Shown one piece after another: positions 49,280-62,915 of a stretch of DNA of 64,000 nt; the stretch's first letter is position 1; the number at the start of each line of letters is the position of its first letter. Where the stretch lies: the NCBI GenBank assembly GCA_030704615.1, contig CM060734.1:59024001-59088000 (forward strand). Direction: 5' to 3'. Source of the stretch: Takakia lepidozioides (Eukaryota > Plantae > Bryophyta). The translations under genes were made by a program, and so were the position numbers. The notes under the pieces were generated by a model, which saw nothing but the letters and a program-made list of their open reading frames with translations, ran no database searches and was not told the origin of the DNA.

Positions 49280-51436
49280 TCACCAGTAATCCCCACAGGA
49301 ACAAAGCCCATCTTCGAAGTGGTGAAAACGGTTGGCATCCCGTACAACAATTCCTCGCCCAGCAATCTTCGAGATGAACTTGGTGGCAGCGTGGCAGTCC
49401 CCACACACCCGAAGGTTCTTGATGATGCGAATAGGTGTCCCGGGGGGCGTGCTGATGAGTCCAAAAGCAATGGCCAGCTTCTCACTGTGGTGGCAAAGAG
49501 ACAACTCCTTGCGCTCCTCCTCCATATCATGCAATACAAAGCGAGTGTCAGGGACATACCCAGCCTCCTTCATCTGCCCAGACAATCTCCTCAGCTCAGT
49601 GTGGATTTCCTCAATTTTTGGATGCACTTTGTCTTCTACAAAGAATGTATGGACCTGATTATCCACCTCAATGCAGCTGCTCCCTGGCACCTTCTTGATA
49701 CCTCTGTCCTCCATCATCTTTCTCACCTTTGCAGAATCCTGCCACCTGCCAACTGCGGCATAGATGTTTGATAGCAGCACATAAATTCCAGCATCCCGTG
49801 GATCCCACTTGAGAAGGCATTTCGCCGCATGTTCTGCCAGCTTGACATTCTCATGAATTCTGCAGGCACCAAGCAAGGCCCCCCACACTGAAGCACCCGG
49901 TTCCATTGGCATGTTGTTTATCAAGTCCTCTGCCTCATCCAATCGCCCTGCACGACCAAGAAGGTCCACCATGCAGGCAAAATGCTGCATAGAAGGAGTG
50001 ACCCCATAATCTCGACTCATGGATTCAAAGTAATGACAGCCTTCATCCACTAGGCCCACATGGCTACACGCAGAGAGAAGAGAGATAAAGGTGATACCAT
50101 CCGGCTTCACGCCTTGTTGTTGCATTTGTTCAAATAGCTGGAGGACCTCATTTCCATACCCATGCTGACCATATCCTCCAATCATCGCACTCCATGAAAC
50201 CACATCTCGCTTGGCCATACTGTTGAACACTTGATGTGCATCTTTCATGCTCCCGCATTTGGCATACATGTCAACAAGGGCAGTCTCCAACGTGATATCT
50301 GCTGCAATCCCCGCTTTTTTAATGTCAGCATGGACCTCTTTGCCTTTTTCCAAGTCTGCCAGGCTGCCACATCCATCAAGAATGCTGATGAATGCGACTC
50401 TGTCAGGCATTACCCCTTCCCGTTGCATTTGCGTATACATCTCGAGAGCCTCCCTACCACACCCATGCTTGACATATCCTGCGATCATCACACTCCATGA
50501 GATGACATTTCGTTTAGCCATTTTGTCAAATACTTGCCGTGAATCCTTCATGCTCCCACATTTGGCATACATATCAGCAAGAGCAGTCTCCAAAATGATT
50601 TGTAGTACAATTCCAGCTTCAAGGATGGCAGCATGGACCTCTTTGCCCTTTTCTAGGGCTCCAAGGCTGGCACACGCATTAACAACACAAGTGAACGTGA
50701 CCCCGTCAGGCATCATCCCTTCCCATTGCATTTGCTCATAAATCACAACAGCCTCCCTCCCACACCCATGCTTGACATATCCTGCTATCATTGTATTCCA
50801 TGTGAACAGATCTCGTTCAGGCATTGTGTCAAAGATTTGGCGTGCATCCACCACACTCCCACACTTTGCATACATGTTGATAAGGGTGTTGCATAGAAAG
50901 ATGTTTGACTTGCATCCACTTTGGCTAATGTGGGCGTGCACCTGCTTTCCTGCTGCTAGGCTTTTTCTCTTGATGCACTCCTGGAGGACATAAATATAAG
51001 TACGAGAGTCTGGACGAATGTCTCCATGCTTCAAAATGTGCAATGCCACTTTGAGCTGTCCTGCCTTACATAGTGTTCTCACATCCCCACAGGCGTCACG
51101 GGAGCTCTTCTTGACCAACTCCCTTGGTCCTTCAAGCCAGGCTGAGTATGGGTGAAATTCCAATTCATCTGAAGGCCGTGTTTGCCCACATTCTGTCCTT
51201 CGACCATACTCTGGACCATTACCAGATATTGCTGGATATTGTATGATGGCTGCGAGCTCTGCTTTCACCCGAGGAGGGTTCGACCAACCCTCAACCCAAA
51301 GGGCCTCCTCTGTGCACTTCTGGTGATCTTGTAGTTTTCTGTAAGAACCACAACCAAGCAGCTGAGCAGCCATTGCTCCAATGACTGCCACACAGACCAG
51401 GCTACAAATACCAAAGCTCCAGGGGAAACCTTGCAC
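49280..51436 (-). CDS. PLS-E-DYW PPR protein (organellar C-to-U RNA editing factor), 11 PPR motifs + E1 + E2 + DYW; true start uncertain
   Basis: PG box KKVPGSSCIEV, HHSEKLAIAFGL (HxE), KNLRVCGDCH (CxxC), RFHHFEDGLCSCGDYW. Track start is GTG; first in-frame ATG at 51373; upstream PDF exons may splice in. Confidence 0.95.
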   Translation of the reverse strand: MQGFPWSFGICSLVCVAVIGAMAAQLLGCGSYRKLQDHQKCTEEALWVEGWSNPPRVKAELAAIIQYPAISGNGPEYGRRTECGQTRPSDELEFHPYSAWLEGPRELVKKSSRDACGDVRTLCKAGQLKVALHILKHGDIRPDSRTYIYVLQECIKRKSLAAGKQVHAHISQSGCKSNIFLCNTLINMYAKCGSVVDARQIFDTMPERDLFTWNTMIAGYVKHGCGREAVVIYEQMQWEGMMPDGVTFTCVVNACASLGALEKGKEVHAAILEAGIVLQIILETALADMYAKCGSMKDSRQVFDKMAKRNVISWSVMIAGYVKHGCGREALEMYTQMQREGVMPDRVAFISILDGCGSLADLEKGKEVHADIKKAGIAADITLETALVDMYAKCGSMKDAHQVFNSMAKRDVVSWSAMIGGYGQHGYGNEVLQLFEQMQQQGVKPDGITFISLLSACSHVGLVDEGCHYFESMSRDYGVTPSMQHFACMVDLLGRAGRLDEAEDLINNMPMEPGASVWGALLGACRIHENVKLAEHAAKCLLKWDPRDAGIYVLLSNIYAAVGRWQDSAKVRKMMEDRGIKKVPGSSCIEVDNQVHTFFVEDKVHPKIEEIHTELRRLSGQMKEAGYVPDTRFVLHDMEEERKELSLCHHSEKLAIAFGLISTPPGTPIRIIKNLRVCGDCHAATKFISKIAGRGIVVRDANRFHHFEDGLCSCGDYW

Positions 51437-52413
51437 ACCCTACTTTCAGGCCGAAATAATATGGTGCTAGCCTCTCATAACAACAGTAACAACCAAATTT
51501 GCTGCTTTTTCATGCTAACGTCAGAACATTTCATCAACCTAACCCACAGGAGACAAAATTAACTAAACAAGTCAACATCATGCAAGCTTCAGTCCAGCCC
51601 TCCGTAGTGAACGGTTCCCCCTCCTCAACAAAGATAGCCTCACCTTATCAAACCTGTTGTCCCACCATTGTGAAGGATCTGAGAAGTCGTCCTGCCAGAG
51701 CCATTCCTGCTCGTTGGTTGGCCTGGGTCCAAGACCTGCAGGAACATGAGAATGTTGCTTGCTTTTAATTGCCTCAGTCTCTATTGATGAACGCTAGTAC
51801 AGCTTCGAGCAACAGTGGTCTCTTTTCTGAATGCAGTCAAAACATACCAAAAACATTGCCTGCTGAAGAGTTACTGAGGCAACCAAGCTGATTGCAGTGA
51901 TACTCACATTCCTCCATAGCCAGTGTTTGACTAGACTCTGTCCTCCCACCAGCACCATATTGCGCTCGAACTTGTACCATGGGAGCTGTCTCTGTCCTCA
52001 CCATTGTGACGTTCAAGCCACCATCAATGCAGATGGGCTCCTTTGTGCACCTATGTTGGATGTCTGGCAGTCTTGGACTTCTCTGTGAAAACCACTAGTG
52101 GACATCTGAGCAGCTAGACTTCAACCGCAGGCTCACATAGACCAGGGTACAAAGCTCCATGCATCTTTTAAATAACAAGGGATGACCTAATGAGGATAAG
52201 CTATTGACAACAATGGTAAAGGCAGGCTTCGCTGCATTTTCTCGACAAGAGTAACGGAAGATGCAATCTAGCATCGAAACGTCATCATGCCAGCTTCAGT
52301 CACCCTGCACATGCTAAATGAAAATAGCCTTACCTCAGCCACCCTGTTCTCCCCGACTGTGAAGCAACTAAAGAAACTCCAGCGAAAACAGTTCTTTGCT
52401 GTTTATTTGGCCT
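51270..52413 (-). other. Two degenerate, intron-split OSB-type PDF motifs upstream of the DYW ORF
   Basis: Half-exons: ~52413-52335 (GQINSKELF..ENRVAE, 1-nt deletion), 52082-51908 (RSPRLPDIQHRCTKEPICIDG), 51735-51644 (EWLWQDDFSDPSQWWDNRFDK), 51338 onward (KTTRSP[del]KCTEEALWVEGWSNPPRVKAEL). Confidence 0.8.
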
Positions 52414-52602
52414 GCATGCAAACACCACTGCAACATAGATCTCTACTCTCTCTCTCACACTATGATCGGCCGTGCAATCATGTAAACGTCGATTGGAGGT
52501 TAAGCTAGTGCAGCCGTGCTGAAATTAACAGTCTTTCTAGCTGATCTGTACATACTAGCCCTCGCATCAGAACTCTCAATGCCGTGGCCCGCAACCAAGA
52601 CT

Positions 52603-52650
<48 letters not shown>

Positions 52651-52668
52651 TCCCCCCTCCCTCTCTCT
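52603..52668 (+). repeat. (CT)n / pyrimidine-rich microsatellite
   Basis: Long ctctctct run with flanking C/T tract. Confidence 0.9.
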
Positions 52669-53469
52669 TTGGCCCTCGGACATTGGGCATGGCGACTGCC
52701 AGTGCGTGCTCCACAGCATTCCAGCTACAAGCATGCGTACCTACACTACAACTCTTCTCCATGTTTTCTCGTTGACGAGTATGCAGGCTGTCTCTGTGCT
52801 TTTTACTTTTCTGTTTTCCGGGCATTCATGCTACCAGAGCGTCTTTCTCCCTTCTCCGCTGACGGTTTTCTATGGCAGCTGGCTTTGTAGAAGGAGCTCG
52901 CAGTTATGGAAACATTAGCTAAAGTTCGCTTACTTTCACCAGCTTCAAGCTGCTGATTATTTGACATTTGATAATTTGAGTCTCTGGGTATTGCTTACTT
53001 GCCAACTTGTGAAAATTTCTCTTTCAGAAATTGGTTGCGGTGTCCAATTCAGATTCCAATAAAAAAGCACTAGGCATCTAATGCTTCAATTTTCAGCTAT
53101 CTGGGTCTCATGCATAAGACGCTCAATTCAGGGGGCGACATGGGCTTGCTCGAGCCCCCTACTACTCTGGTACTGGACTCAGGTTTAAGTGTGGACTGCA
53201 TACAAACACCCTATCTGTGCGTGGGGTGCATGCAGCTCACTGACAGTACAATATAAACTGGCCAATTTAGTGCCTCAAATTAGTCTATGACCATTCCAGC
53301 CTCATGTTTTTGTCGGGGCACACTTCATCCATGTTGCTCGAGTCGCAGTCGCAATTCCTATCTTGGAAGTGCTGAGAATGGTTGGCGTCCTGTACAACAA
53401 CTGCTCACCAAAAGTTTTTGGTGATGTTGGCAGGTAGCTGAGGTTATGCATTGGCGAGCCAGCTATCGT

Positions 53470-53868
53470 GTGGTGCAGTTTGTTGTCAGATTAGATTATC
53501 TTGCTTTTAGTCATGTGGTGACACCACATACCCCAAGTTTGTTGAGGATAGGCCAATGAACCCAAAAGCAATGACTAGCTTCTCACTGTGTCTTCTCACT
53601 GTGTCGTGGCAGAAAGAAAATCCCTCTTGCTCCTCCACCTTGCCATGCAGTACAGAGCATGTGTCAGGCAACCATCCAGACGATTCATCAGTTCAGCATG
53701 TATATCATCAGTTTGTGGACGCCATATGTGTTTGAATCAAAGAGTGTTAGGAATATGGCTGTCAACCCCAGTGCAGCCTCCATCATTTTTACCACATCTC
53801 CATTCCTCCCAACTGCCAACAGCCGAACTCTCCGATAGTAGCACATAGATTCCGGAATATTGTGGATC
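53470..53868 (-). pseudogene. Decayed E2/DYW tail of the 53869-57152 PPR gene
   Basis: Past the TGA: DPQYSGIYVLLS, remnants of PQTDDIHAEL, VLH, a duplicated HSEK (13-bp tandem at 53579-53604), HSEKLVIAFGFI, KLGVCG; many indels. Confidence 0.88.
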
Positions 53869-56800
53869 TCACTTGAGAAGATATTTTGCTACACGTTCTG
53901 CTCTCTCCAGATCCCCTTGAGTTCTACAGGCACCGTTCAAGGCCCACCACACCCCAGCATCCGGCTTAATTGGCATATCTTTGATGAAGTTTTCTGCCTC
54001 ATCTAATCGCCCTTCACGGCCAAGAAGGTCAACTATGCAGGCAAAATGCTCCACTGTGGGAGTGAGGCCATAATTTCGACTCATGGACTCAAAGTAGTGA
54101 CGGCCTTCATCCACTAAGCCCATATGGCTACAAGCAGAGAGTACAGATGTGAAAGTGATACTGTCTGGCTTCAAGCCTTCTTGTTGCATTTTTTGAAATA
54201 GTTGGAAGGCCTCGGTACCAGCCCCATGCTGAGCATATCCTGTGATCATTGCATTCCATGAGACCACATCTCGGTCAGCTATATTGTCAAAAACTTCACG
54301 TGCATCCTTTATGCTCCCACATTTAGCATACATGTCCACAAGGGCATTCTCCAGATTTATGTACGACAAAATTCTAGCGGTCATGATATCAGCATGGACC
54401 TTTTTGCCAATTTCAAGGGCGCCAATGCTGGCGCACGCATTGAGAACGCAAATGAATGTAACTCTGTCTGGTGAAATCCCTTTCCATATCATTCTCTCGT
54501 ATGTGTCATAAGCCTCCCTACCATACCCATGCTGACTATACCCTGCAATCATCACGTTCCATGAGACCACATCTTGTTCAGCCATCTGGTCGAACACATC
54601 ACTTGCATCCTTTAGGCTCCCACATTTAGCATACATGTCTACAAGGGTATTCTCCAGATTTATATCTGTAGAAATTCCACTTTTGCTGATGTCAGCATGA
54701 ACCTTTCGCCCCTTATCCAGGGCCCCTAGGCTGGCACACGCATTGAGAACACCAATGAATGTGACCTGGTTGGGCATCACCCCTTCCCGTATCATTTGCT
54801 CATACATATCCAAAGCCTCCATACCACAGCCATTCTGAGCATTAGCTGTGATCATAACACTCCATGACACCACATTTCGTTCTGACATCTTGTCAAACAC
54901 TTCCAGTGCATCCTCTACACTCCCACATTTGGCATACATGTCAACAAGGGCAGTCTCCAGAATGACATCAGGCGCAATCCCAGATTTAATGATATCGGCA
55001 TGGACCTCTTTGCCCTTTTCCAGGGCTTGTTCACTACCACATGCCTTGAGAAGGCAAATGAATGTGACCCTATTGGGGGACACCCCTGCTCGTGTCATTT
55101 GCTCATACATATCCAAAGCTTCCCTACCACAACCATGCTGAGCATATCCTCCGATCATTGCACTCCATGAGACCACATTCCGTTCAGCCATCTTGTCAAA
55201 CACTTGACGTGCGTCCTTCATGCTCCCTGATTTTGCATACATGTCAGCAAGGGCAGTCTCCAGAATGATATCTGGCGCAATTCTGGCACTGACGATCTGA
55301 GCATGGACCTCTTTGCCCTTATCCAGGTCTCCAAGGCTGGCACACGCATTGAGAGCACAAATGAACGTGACCCTATTGGGCTTCACCCCTTCCTGTATCA
55401 TTTGTTCATAGATCTTACATGCCTCCCGACCAGATCCATGCTTCACATAGCCTGCCATCATTATAGTGAATGTAGACACATCCCGTTCAGGCATTTGATC
55501 AAACACTTCACGTGCATGCACCACACTTCTGCACTTGGCATACATGTTGACAAGGGTGTTGACTAGGGAGGTTTTTGGCTTGAATACATTGTGCATGATG
55601 TGGGCGTGCAACTGCTTCCCCCCTGCTAGGTTTTTCATTTTGATGCACTCTTGCAACAGGAAGACATAAGTATTCGAGTCTACTGAAATGCCTGGTTGGT
55701 TCAAAATGCGCAGTGCCTCTTTCAGTTGTCCTGCCTTACATAGAGCCATCAAATCTCCACAAGTGTCTGGAGAATTCTTGTGAACTCCGACTTTCTGTCC
55801 GCTTTCAGAAACAGTGGTCATGGTAGATGTGCCAAACTGATTCAACCCCTGACTGGACCCTGCCATCCTGCATGCACCAAACAGCTGGAGTTAGAAAATT
55901 TTACACTCAAAACCCAAAATACACCTGCCCAAGCAGTGAACCATCAGAAGGGAGACAGGCTTGATGCTACATATTAACAGGGTTCAAAAAGCCCAACTCT
56001 ATATGTTTGAGTTGGAACCCTTCAACCCTCAAGAAAACAATACCCGTTGTGATCACAGCCTGGGCTTCCATGTTGTGCATCGACAAGAAAATGAGCGCCA
56101 GATTGTGTTCGACCTTGCACCATTGTAGAGAGTTCCGCGTTCACCCACGCAGGGTTCGAGCAACCGTCAATCCAGAGGGCCTCCTGTGTGCGCTTATGTC
56201 TGAAATCCGGCGAACTCGGATTTTCCTGTGAAAAATAGCAGTGGGCAGCATGAGTAGCCATAACTTCAGCCACAGCCTCGCTAGACCAGTCTAGTGCCAC
56301 TCAAGTTACAAGCATTATTCAAATCACAGGGAACAACTTTGAGCAAACTCTTTCCACCTGTGGAGAGGAACAAGATGAAGACTTGACAATAATTTTAAGA
56401 ACAGGAGATATAATCCAAGTCACAAAACAATGTGCCAGCTTCAGTCACAAACCCCCTTGAGAAACTCGTTCAAGATGGCCTCACCTTTTCAAACCGGTTG
56501 TCCCACCACTGGGAAGGATCTGAGAAGAACTCCTGCCAGAGCAGTTCTTTGCTCACTGCTTGGCCTGCGTGCAAGCACTGAATTAACATGAGGGGACAGG
56601 GGCTATGGGTGAACCCCTCATCATGTGAAGAGAAACCTGGTGAATACTTCCACACAAACAGGTTCTCGAAAACGGCCATTGCCGCAAGAAAGACGAGTAA
56701 GTGAAGTCTCTCTCTCTCGACTGCACGCAATAAATGGAAAGAAGATAGATATATGAGACATTTCAAAATTTCCAGCAGATACTACTGAATGAGCTGATAG

Positions 56801-57152
56801 AAGGAGGAATGCATCGATTACACTGCTGAATGACATGCTGGGTTGGATTAAGGACAAAATGGCGCCTGGATCACACCGCCGCAATCAGATTAGACCCAAC
56901 AGCGTCCGAAAATATTCGCGTGTCTGTACCTTTCTTCCATATCCCTAGAGGCTGGGGAGGTGTCATAGCGATTACTGGCAAAGGTCTTGCACCCTCTATC
57001 GGCAAGCTGGATACCCATCTCCCCTCCGCAGCTAGGCCGGTCAATCTGCTGCATGATGTGAAGCTTGCTGCCCATCTTCCGGAGGGAGAAGACAAGGCCC
57101 TCGGCACGGCCTCTCCCTGCACGCTCAGGAGAGCGACCGCCCGCGCGGCCAT
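53869..57152 (-). CDS. Predicted PDF-motif/PLS-PPR fusion protein (exons 57152-56930, 56564-56485, 56225-56044, 55867-53869; 827 aa): transit-peptide-like leader, intact PDF motif, 17 PPR motifs, E1
   Basis: Exon lengths 223+80+182+1999 = 2484 nt with intron phases 1, 0, 2 all compatible and GT-AG ends. Spliced motif ELLWQEFFSDPSQWWDNRFEK|ENPSSPDFRHKRTQEALWIDGCSNPAWVNAEL. PPR exon is very secure; exon 1 is the least certain. Confidence 0.8.
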
Positions 57153-57992
57153 CCTTAGTCCTTCGATGAGAGGGCCAAGATGACAGCACCTAGGAGACGC
57201 ATGCTTTCGTTGTGCTCTCCCGATAGAGCTGGAGACTTAGCTCTGGGACAAAAGCTTCATGACTTTTAGAATATTGACGGAAATGATCAAGGTAAATCAT
57301 CAATGACCTTTGCAGAACATGTTGATAGAGGATACTTATTAGAAGCAGCCTAACAATGAGGTTCGAATTTGTCACAGATTTATGGACTCTGCAAGATCTC
57401 ACTGGAGAGATGAGATTGGCAGCAATTGGGCTTAGCAGTGAGAGCTCTGAGGGAAGCAGCAGGTGAATCAGAGCCTGTTAACTCATAACTCTTCCTTCAC
57501 ATGACTGGAACCATACATGTCTGTGAAATGTTGTAGACTGGAGAACTGAAACCCCTCAATCTCTTGGCGCCTCTTTCTGCCAAAGGCAATACAACCTGAA
57601 TCCTAGGTTTGGCACTCAGAGACGAAAAACTCTATGCTTAGAAGTGTTGTCAGGATAGTAATTGCTAGTCTACTTTATCTTGATACAACTTAGCTTAAGG
57701 GTAGTGGTCTGATCTTGGGGCTTCTCTTGTTCAACATTTTTTTATGCAAAATTTTACACGACAATTTTCTGCATGCCTACTATACCCTTGCAAATTCTGT
57801 TGACAAAGTTCTGGGAAACTGCTGCCATTGATGATCATATCTAATGGTGATCATTACACAGGCGCAGCTCCTGACAGTGGTACTCCATCACATAGCTAGT
57901 TTCTTCAACTTTTCTGTGCTTACAACAACATAAATTTTTTGCACCCTCACGATCCACCATTCAAGTGACGCACTTTCTGCATGCTGCTCATT

Positions 57993-58965
57993 TCACCAGT
58001 AATTCCCACAAGAAGGAAAACCCATCTTGGAAGTGGTACAAGCTGTTGGAATGACTGCTCGCCACACAATCTTCGAGCTGAACTTGATGGCAGTGTGGCA
58101 CTCACCACACACCCAAAGTTTCTTTGTGATGTGGATAGGCGTCCCATGGAATAATCCCAAAAGCAATGGCCAGCCTCTTGCTGTCAAGGCACGGAGAGAG
58201 TTCCTTAATCTTGTCCACACCATGGTGTGTATCAGGCACATACTTGGCCTCCGTCATAGATCCAGACACTATGTTCAGTTCAGAATGAATTTACCCAATT
58301 CTTGGGAACAATGTCTTCTGTGACGGAAGTATGTACCTTGTTGTCCACCTCCGTGTGGCTTCTTTTCTGACGCTGTCCTCCATTAGTTTGCTTTAACAAC
58401 CAACCAGTCAGCATAAGCTGTGGCGTCCGGATCCCACTTGTCCAGGCATTTTTCTCATGTACTGCACACGATATCACTATGAACTTGGTAGGCACCAAGC
58501 AAGGCCCCTCAACCTTTGCAATTGGTTCAGTTGGACTTTTCTTTAGTAGGTCCCTTCACCTCATCCACTTGGACTTGACAGCCAAGAAGGGCCCCTATAC
58601 AGCCAAAATACTCCACTGTGGAGTGAGGCCATCATCTTGATACATTGAAACCGAAGCAGTGATGCCCTTCCTCCACTAGGCCCACAGAGGAGACATAAAG
58701 GTGACACCATTTGGCCTCAAGCCTTCCTGTTGCATTTGCTCAAATAATCGGAGGGCCTCTTACCGGACCTCTTCGCATTTTTCCACTCCTGGGATGGCAA
58801 ACAAGAATGTGAGCCTGTCAGGGGTCACCTCTTCCAGCTGCATTTGGGCATAGAATCTGAAAGACTTCTCAGCAAGCCCATGCTCGTTACATCATCATAG
58901 TCAACGTAACCATATCTCTTTAGGACATAGTGTCAAACAATTGTTGTGCATCTACCACACTGTTG
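57993..58965 (-). pseudogene. PPR-DYW pseudogene (third tandem paralog)
   Basis: Frameshifted remnants SVVDAQQLFDTM, LFEQMQQEGLRPNGVTF, GLVEEG, ALLGA, EVDNKVHT, KKLWVCGECHTAIKFSSKI, SCGNYW*; large internal deletions. Confidence 0.9.
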
Positions 58966-62644: not shown

Positions 62645-62915
62645 CCTGATGTTTACAAGGTTCTTGGGAAAGTCAGCTTGGTCATAGGAGTCTGTGTTTC
62701 AATCGACGCCCGCTCAGCTACACCATGGTAGTTCTCATAGACCAATCCGACATGACTACAGACACAAGCAGCAGACACAAGAAGTCCTCTTGGGTTCATG
62801 GTCAGTCAAATCCTCCATGGGTTTCCTAATATTTACAAGGTTCTTGGGAGAGTTAGCTTGGTCTTAGCAAGCCGCATTTCAATCGCGTTTCAATCTTTGT
62901 CCGCTCAGCTGCACC
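62645..62915 (+). repeat. Diverged direct repeat, 180-bp spacing
   Basis: tttacaaggttcttggga.agt.agcttggtc...tttcaatcg...ccgctcagct.cacc.tggt at 62652 and 62832. Confidence 0.7.

Follow-up and report, generated by a model that had tools for sequence, protein, structure and literature searches.

A spliced Takakia gene joins an OSB-type PDF motif to a PLS-class PPR array and belongs to a family found across seedless land plants

Do two short peptides encoded on the minus strand of a moss chromosome, each resembling one half of the PDF motif of plant Organellar Single-stranded DNA Binding (OSB) proteins, belong to the same gene as the pentatricopeptide repeat (PPR) array that lies 3' of them, and if so, what kind of protein does that gene encode? 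The locus in question, which we call gene A, lies in a stretch of 64,000 nucleotides from Takakia lepidozioides (assembly GCA_030704615.1, contig CM060734.1, positions 59,024,001 to 59,088,000; hereafter, the window). A first-pass annotation made from the letters alone had proposed that an intact PDF motif is spliced in frame onto a PLS-class PPR array at this locus. We show that the locus is a nuclear gene, transcribed and spliced, that encodes a protein of 827 amino acids, and that proteins of this architecture form a family across liverworts, Sphagnum mosses, lycophytes, and ferns. In the current scheme, a PPR editing factor consists of a transit peptide, a PPR tract, and an E/DYW tail, and an N-terminal PDF motif is an extra part that goes ignored. 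What is new at this locus is the proof of splicing, the introns held in common with OSB genes, and the loss of a DYW domain with the PDF-PLS frame kept, beside a neighboring copy that displays the opposite pattern.

Four exons and three GT-AG introns on the minus strand yield a single 827-codon frame that has no internal stop and reads, in order, as a leader, a single PDF motif, a linker of ~75 amino acids, and a PLS-class PPR array (Table 1). On the 5' side of the ATG, the frame first meets a stop at 57237-57239, and no other ATG intervenes. The leader encoded by exon 1 is rich in Ala, Ser, Leu, Pro, and Arg (12 Ala, 12 Ser plus Thr, 8 basic, and 3 acidic residues), a composition that makes it a candidate organelle transit peptide. 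Exon 4 matches the Pfam models PPR_2 (E = 1.2e-100) and PPR (E = 1.7e-93) over 10 to 12 stretches; its repeats are tandem P, L, and S motifs ending in P2-L2-S2-E1, and its best relatives are PLS-E/DYW proteins. Pfam finds no family on the exon 1 leader, on either PDF exon, or on the complete PDF regions of homologues.

Two sequencing runs from the window's organism (X1 and X2), stored as contigs, bear on whether this frame is assembled by splicing. Record 5 of X1 (391 nt, one mismatch) covers 56225-56043 and then continues directly with 55866-55714, so that intron 3 is removed and the junction between exons 3 and 4 is shown directly; the one-base offsets reflect the G with which both intron 3 and exon 4 begin. 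An alternative in-frame donor at 56149, within exon 3, was rejected because the same contig reads through to 56043. The first 55 letters of record 5 place elsewhere and presumably lie on exon 2, and record 6 of X1 covers 57243-56929 and is followed by 51 letters that likewise place elsewhere. Depth was zero in both runs in the bins 56282-56462 (inside intron 2) and 56644-56824 (inside intron 1) and again across 52662-53023, beyond the downstream ends of the contigs listed (52598-52670 was skipped as a repeat in the scan). The RNA nature of the runs was only guessed at the outset, and the spliced contig, the empty intron bins, and the empty interval at 52662-53023 argue that they are indeed RNA. 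The bin that holds exon 2 has a high summed depth, consistent with contigs from many related copies. At the 3' end, record 2 of X1 covers 53037-53828, and transcripts reach at least 53037. Record 9 of X2 (53312-54071) spans the stop codon without differing letters, which independently confirms the TGA if X2 comes from a sample other than the assembly's own. Only three contig differences fall within the coding frame, two of them synonymous and the third I61M in the leader. Within 53312-53828, in the 3' untranslated region, record 2 of X1 and record 9 of X2 are both 13 letters short relative to the window, with an allele or an assembly insertion as possible causes.

The two short exons are complementary halves of one PDF motif, meeting at intron 2. 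Against a profile built from 15 motif copies with the window excluded (A1), exon 2 reaches 45.7 bits (positions 2-30) and exon 3 reaches 59.7 bits (positions 26-69). Against an OSB-only profile of 162 PDF copies from 71 OB-fold proteins, the scores are 32.1 bits for exon 2 (E = 1e-8, positions 5-30) and 43.5 bits for exon 3 (E = 3e-12, positions 27-63), and in a six-frame translation of the window this profile finds no other comparable match except the neighboring copy (copy B, described below). By reading, the gene A motif retains every one of the 15 invariant positions of A1. A search with A1 recovered 1292 representative proteins at E <= 0.001 among 1.84 billion; the best 150 of these matches include 72 with an OB-fold, 67 with PDF motifs only, and 12 PPR proteins, and the residues that are invariant or nearly so across OSB-type, PDF-only, and PPR-linked copies are all kept in gene A. 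The link between the two contexts can also be drawn from the OSB side. Protein P0121, in which two PDF motifs come after a Pfam SSB OB-fold, matches the motif region of a Diphasiastrum PPR protein at E = 2.3e-25 and is the sole match among proteins of 165-525 amino acids; in many plants, the relatives of P0121 bear the names OSB1, OSB2, and OSB3, Physcomitrium OSB1 among them. The first-pass annotation thus fares well on its central points: its exon and intron coordinates, its phases of 1, 0, and 2, and its link to the leader through the phase-1 intron are exact on recheck; record 5 of X1 shows the in-frame junction of PDF exon and PPR exon; and the OSB-type identity that it assigned to the motif is upheld by the scores of both halves on the OSB-only profile and by the P0121 match. 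Two outcomes that it named as refuting, PDF exons that never join the PPR exon and a peptide that fails against an OSB PDF alignment, are thereby contradicted.

Table 1. Features of gene A and its transcript in the Takakia lepidozioides window (all on the minus strand)
Feature	Coordinates	Strand	Basis
5' untranslated leader (minimum length)	57153..57243	-	X1 record 6 starts at 57243
Exon 1, ATG and 74-amino-acid leader	56930..57152	-	Frame; contig end at donor
Intron 1, GT..AG, phase 1, 365 nt	56565..56929	-	Frame; zero depth in bin 56644-56824
Exon 2, 80 nt, first half of PDF motif, ...KELLWQEFFSDPSQWWDNRFEK	56485..56564	-	Profile matches
Intron 2, GT..AG, phase 0, 259 nt, immediately after WWDNRxxK	56226..56484	-	Frame; zero depth in bin 56282-56462
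Exon 3, 182 nt, second half of PDF motif, ENPSSPDFRHKRTQEALWIDGCSNPAWV, and start of linker	56044..56225	-	Profile; X1 record 5
Intron 3, GT..AG, phase 2, 176 nt, within linker	55868..56043	-	Absent from X1 record 5
Exon 4, coding part, linker and PLS-class PPR array, 665 amino acids, TGA at 53869-53871 in E1 motif	53869..55867	-	Pfam; copy B alignment
Decayed E2/DYW remnant, transcribed as 3' untranslated region	53290..53868	-	Copy B tail alignment; X1 record 2, X2 record 9

Long arrays of PDF motifs also exist outside the OSB and PPR contexts: P0123, from the dinoflagellate Effrenium voratum, has nine PDF copies and no OB-fold, and P0122, a protein of 1160 amino acids from the angiosperm Kingdonia uniflora, has an OB-fold and 13 PDF copies. 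Elsewhere in the window, a weak piece resembling the second half of the motif (KSSWVHGQSNPPWV, E = 0.03) lies at 62782-62823 on the plus strand and may be a chance match or a further decayed module.

AlphaFold, run on 101 PDF copies, places a helix at positions 2-17, strands at 22-24 and 37-39, and a second helix at 55-70 (mean predicted local distance difference test score [pLDDT], 83.7), and the same elements appear in a liverwort motif modeled together with the first PPR repeats (pLDDT 89.8). The PDF motif is therefore confidently predicted to adopt a small helix/beta-hairpin/helix fold. Structure and sequence searches assigned it to no known fold: Foldseek found nothing at E <= 0.001 against the PDB, the best Z score of a wide VIA-align search (4.6) fell under the level that its notes call meaningful, and profile A2 found nothing meaningful among the sequences of solved structures (best E, 0.43).

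Is the fusion peculiar to Takakia? A search with the PPR exon did not return an annotated protein of gene A itself; the best relatives are only 47-54% identical, the best named ones being from the lycophyte Diphasiastrum complanatum, and 16 of the 120 best PPR matches carry the motif LWQEFFSDPSQWWDNR..K..P.YPDFKHK.T.E.LW..G..NP.WV N-terminal to their PPR repeats. PDF-PPR proteins, which have one to three PDF motifs ahead of a PLS array in one frame, just as gene A does, come from the liverwort Calypogeia fissa (P0067, with a full DYW domain), several Sphagnum species (P0292, P0229, and P0222), Diphasiastrum (many proteins), and the fern Adiantum capillus-veneris (P0170, with two modules). The order of PDF motif and then PLS array is the same in P0067, P0292, P0170, P0215, and many Diphasiastrum proteins, and complete PDF-PPR-DYW members exist (P0067, P0009, P0215, and P0222). 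Many relatives, including proteins of Sphagnum and Diphasiastrum, end naturally in an E motif without DYW, and the DYW-less Sphagnum proteins fall into clusters at 90% identity that span several species of the genus. In the set of the 120 best PPR matches, uncorrected for relatedness and for cut gene models, 11 of the 16 PDF-bearing proteins end in E without DYW, versus 15 of the 104 PDF-less ones. A literature search of limited coverage found no description of a PDF motif joined to PPR proteins, and no PDF or OSB module appears in a 2024 review of PPR architectures; annotation pipelines miss the module because it has no Pfam model. Current models and synthetic PPR designs ignore a conserved N-terminal module of four seedless land-plant lineages.

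Intron positions, obtained by mapping proteins back to their genomic loci, tell us how this module may have reached PPR genes. The phase-0 intron after WWDNRxxK is present in the window and in the PDF-PPR genes of Calypogeia (L001), Sphagnum (L003), and Adiantum (L004, in both modules), and the phase-1 intron that precedes the first-half PDF exon is shared by the window, the Calypogeia PDF-PPR gene, and the second Adiantum module, the resolved cases among PDF-PPR genes. Both introns, with identical phases, are also found in two liverwort OSB genes, those for P0332 of Calypogeia and P0329 of Marchantia. Intron 3 of the window, on the other hand, is absent from the Calypogeia and Sphagnum genes, in which the second-half exon continues into the PPR array. 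The first-pass annotation had singled out the WWDNRxxK intron as a feature to look for elsewhere, and it is found in PDF-PPR and liverwort OSB genes alike; the in-frame fusion that it described is correct, although it is the property of a family across seedless land plants and is not particular to this locus. Because intron position and phase match on both sides of the mini-exon, the data favor transfer of the module as genomic DNA; convergence or transfer through cDNA is disfavored because neither would leave matching introns. As judged from gene structure, the PDF module was probably passed between an OSB gene and a PPR gene in the form of genomic exons, early in land-plant history. The shared introns would make this a tangible example of two families of organelle nucleic-acid proteins trading a module at the level of exons. 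In the Sinapis alba OSB gene (L002), all PDF motifs lie in one exon, as opposed to the liverwort OSB genes (L005 and L006) with their phase-0 intron, which was apparently lost in the angiosperm lineage of Sinapis alba.

The 3' end of gene A tells a different part of its history, which can be read against its neighbor, copy B (49280-52425, minus strand). The 718-amino-acid open reading frame of copy B (49280-51436, minus strand) is a complete PLS-E-DYW protein, and the TGA of gene A aligns to the Trp of its LLKWDP in E1. The ~570 nt 3' of this TGA still resemble E2/DYW but carry five further stops, one frameshift, and several deletions, and the CxxCH and the DYW end are lost; no in-frame E1-E2-DYW with the HxE and CxxCH zinc sites exists in gene A. 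A nonsense change followed by decay has cost the gene its E2/DYW deaminase tail, a loss that the first-pass annotation does not mention, and its word "intact" therefore holds for the PDF motif, with 15 of 15 invariant A1 positions, and not for the gene. Disabling lesions are distributed very unevenly: six fall in the ~570 nt after the TGA and none in the 2481 nt before it, where ~26 would be expected at an equal rate. In an ungapped block of 331 codons, the ratio of nonsynonymous to synonymous substitution rates (dN/dS) between gene A and copy B, as an average over both lineages and over time, is 0.31 (dS, 0.71). The 827 codons 5' of the TGA have stayed open and, on this comparison, look constrained. 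Given the lesion-free 5' frame, the dN/dS, and the relatives that naturally end in E, we read gene A as a maintained DYW-less PDF-PLS gene.

Copy B is the reverse of gene A, in that its PDF modules are decayed and its DYW domain is kept. Its first-half PDF exon (51641-51712) still scores a good 31.8 bits, its second half (51245-51322) has lost PDF.HK and the tryptophan of WV, and an older broken second half is present at 51960-52088; the stretch equivalent to intron 3 of gene A is read through in copy B as a single open reading frame. The two genes are separated by a (GA)n/(CT)n simple-repeat tract at ~52580-52700. On the other side, 5' of gene A, a lone DYW-tail fragment (...WVCGECHTAIKF...GNYW) at 57993-58498 on the minus strand has no PPR array attached and looks like the remnant of a third copy.

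What, then, might the protein do? The explanation that we favor overall, and to which we give somewhat better than an even chance, is that gene A is an expressed PDF-PLS gene that has lost its DYW domain and whose product would be imported into an organelle, with the PDF motif serving as a clamp 5' of the PPR footprint. On their RNA, PPR tracts are oriented with the N-terminal repeats toward the 5' side, and the gene A array would read a specific RNA in this usual orientation; because the PDF motif lies ahead of the first repeat, this polarity would set it at the 5' edge of the bound RNA. Tethered there, it could clamp single-stranded nucleic acid, whatever its sequence, immediately 5' of the PPR footprint and raise affinity or on-rate, and the ~75-residue linker of gene A would make the clamp a flexible tether. 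Without DYW, the protein could bind or stabilize RNA, or it could provide specificity and depend on a deaminase in trans. In AtOSB1, the PDF motif by itself suffices to bind single-stranded DNA (PMC6963530). The role of a motif so far tied only to OSB proteins and to mitochondrial genome stability would in this way be widened.

Several points weigh against this explanation. Organelle import, RNA reading, and the clamp role are inferred steps; single-stranded DNA is the only ligand reported for the PDF motif, RNA not being reported; and the ~75-residue linker of gene A departs from the short linker of the modeled liverwort protein. The dN/dS value, averaged as it is over two lineages and over time, speaks less directly for gene A as it now stands, and the nonsense codon and the decayed tail show that part of the gene's ancestral function has been lost. 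The case for X1 and X2 as RNA is an argument from the spliced contig and the empty intron bins, and junctions 1 and 2 are placed from contigs that end exactly at exon borders, with no bridging contig among those listed.

A broader claim, which we regard as possible but doubtful, is that PDF-PPR proteins are an ancient class of organellar RNA factors that predates the split between bryophytes and vascular plants and combines an OSB-derived clamp with a PPR tract, in which the PDF motif either binds RNA as well as DNA or couples editing or processing to the single-stranded DNA of the nucleoid. If this were true, the frequent lack of DYW would mark PDF-dependent working with a deaminase in trans, in plants that are not known to have MORF proteins.

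One challenge to the favored explanation of a maintained gene is that gene A is an expressed pseudogene, a copy that died at the TGA in E1 and whose transcript and open frame are leftovers that yield no functional protein. The nonsense codon at a conserved Trp and the heavily broken E2/DYW remnant are what such a history would leave behind, and copy B demonstrates that members of this family decay in parts. A dead gene, however, should have accumulated lesions on both sides of the stop, and the full set lies 3' of it; the low dN/dS, the complete set of invariant PDF positions, the correctly spliced transcript, and the conserved DYW-less PDF-PPR proteins of Sphagnum and Diphasiastrum all speak for a gene that has been kept, and we judge the pseudogene unlikely.

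The mechanism offered in the first-pass annotation differs from the clamp in its ligand: the PDF motif would bind organellar single-stranded DNA in transcription bubbles or R-loops and hold the PPR reader at the nucleoid. Replication intermediates could serve as well, and co-transcriptional action on nascent RNA would become possible. Its appeal is that single-stranded DNA is the reported ligand of the motif in AtOSB1 (PMC6963530) and that the same conserved residues recur in the OSB and PPR contexts. Members with a short linker, however, place the PDF motif directly before the first PPR repeat, a geometry that contact with RNA fits at least equally well; tethering at the nucleoid, like the added non-specific affinity proposed with it, is something we could only infer, and we consider it improbable. 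It is very unlikely that the PDF motif is instead a protein-protein contact module for self-association or for binding OSB or other partners, perhaps recruiting a deaminase in trans: the excess of E-ending proteins among PDF-bearing matches, the tetramers formed by AtOSB2 (PMC6963530), and the reciprocal losses of copies A and B would suit such a module, but that excess, being uncorrected for relatedness, may stem from a single clade in Diphasiastrum or from cut gene models, some PDF-PPR proteins do have a full DYW domain, and the conserved Trp, Arg, Lys, and Phe would look more like a nucleic-acid surface.

The gene A protein can be set beside three known systems. With the OSB proteins (AtOSB1-4, reviewed in PMC6963530) it has in common a PDF motif of roughly 50 amino acids with the same invariant residues, and with liverwort OSB genes it has in common the phase-0 intron after WWDNRxxK and the preceding phase-1 intron; both proteins are presumed to be organellar. 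Gene A differs, however, in having no SSB-type OB-fold: Pfam PF00436, which is present in P0121 and in Marchantia P0329, is absent from exons 1, 2, and 3 and from the PPR exon. Whereas OSB proteins carry the PDF motif C-terminal to the OB-fold, gene A carries it N-terminally, followed by the PPR array, and its protein shares the OSB module but is not a member of the OSB family. The PLS-class PPR editing factors (PPR-E and PPR-DYW) have a like PLS array with P2-L2-S2-E1, gene A has an E2/DYW remnant downstream of its array, and its relatives P0067 and P0009 carry complete DYW deaminase domains; gene A departs from these factors in its extra N-terminal PDF motif, its 5' introns, its E1 end, and its lack of a deaminase. 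PPR-SMR proteins and PRORP (PPR plus an NYN nuclease) resemble PDF-PPR proteins in pairing a sequence-reading PPR tract with a second nucleic-acid module. The modules of PPR-SMR and PRORP, however, are C-terminal, enzymatic, and borne by P-class proteins, whereas the PDF module is a small N-terminal binding motif on proteins of the PLS class.

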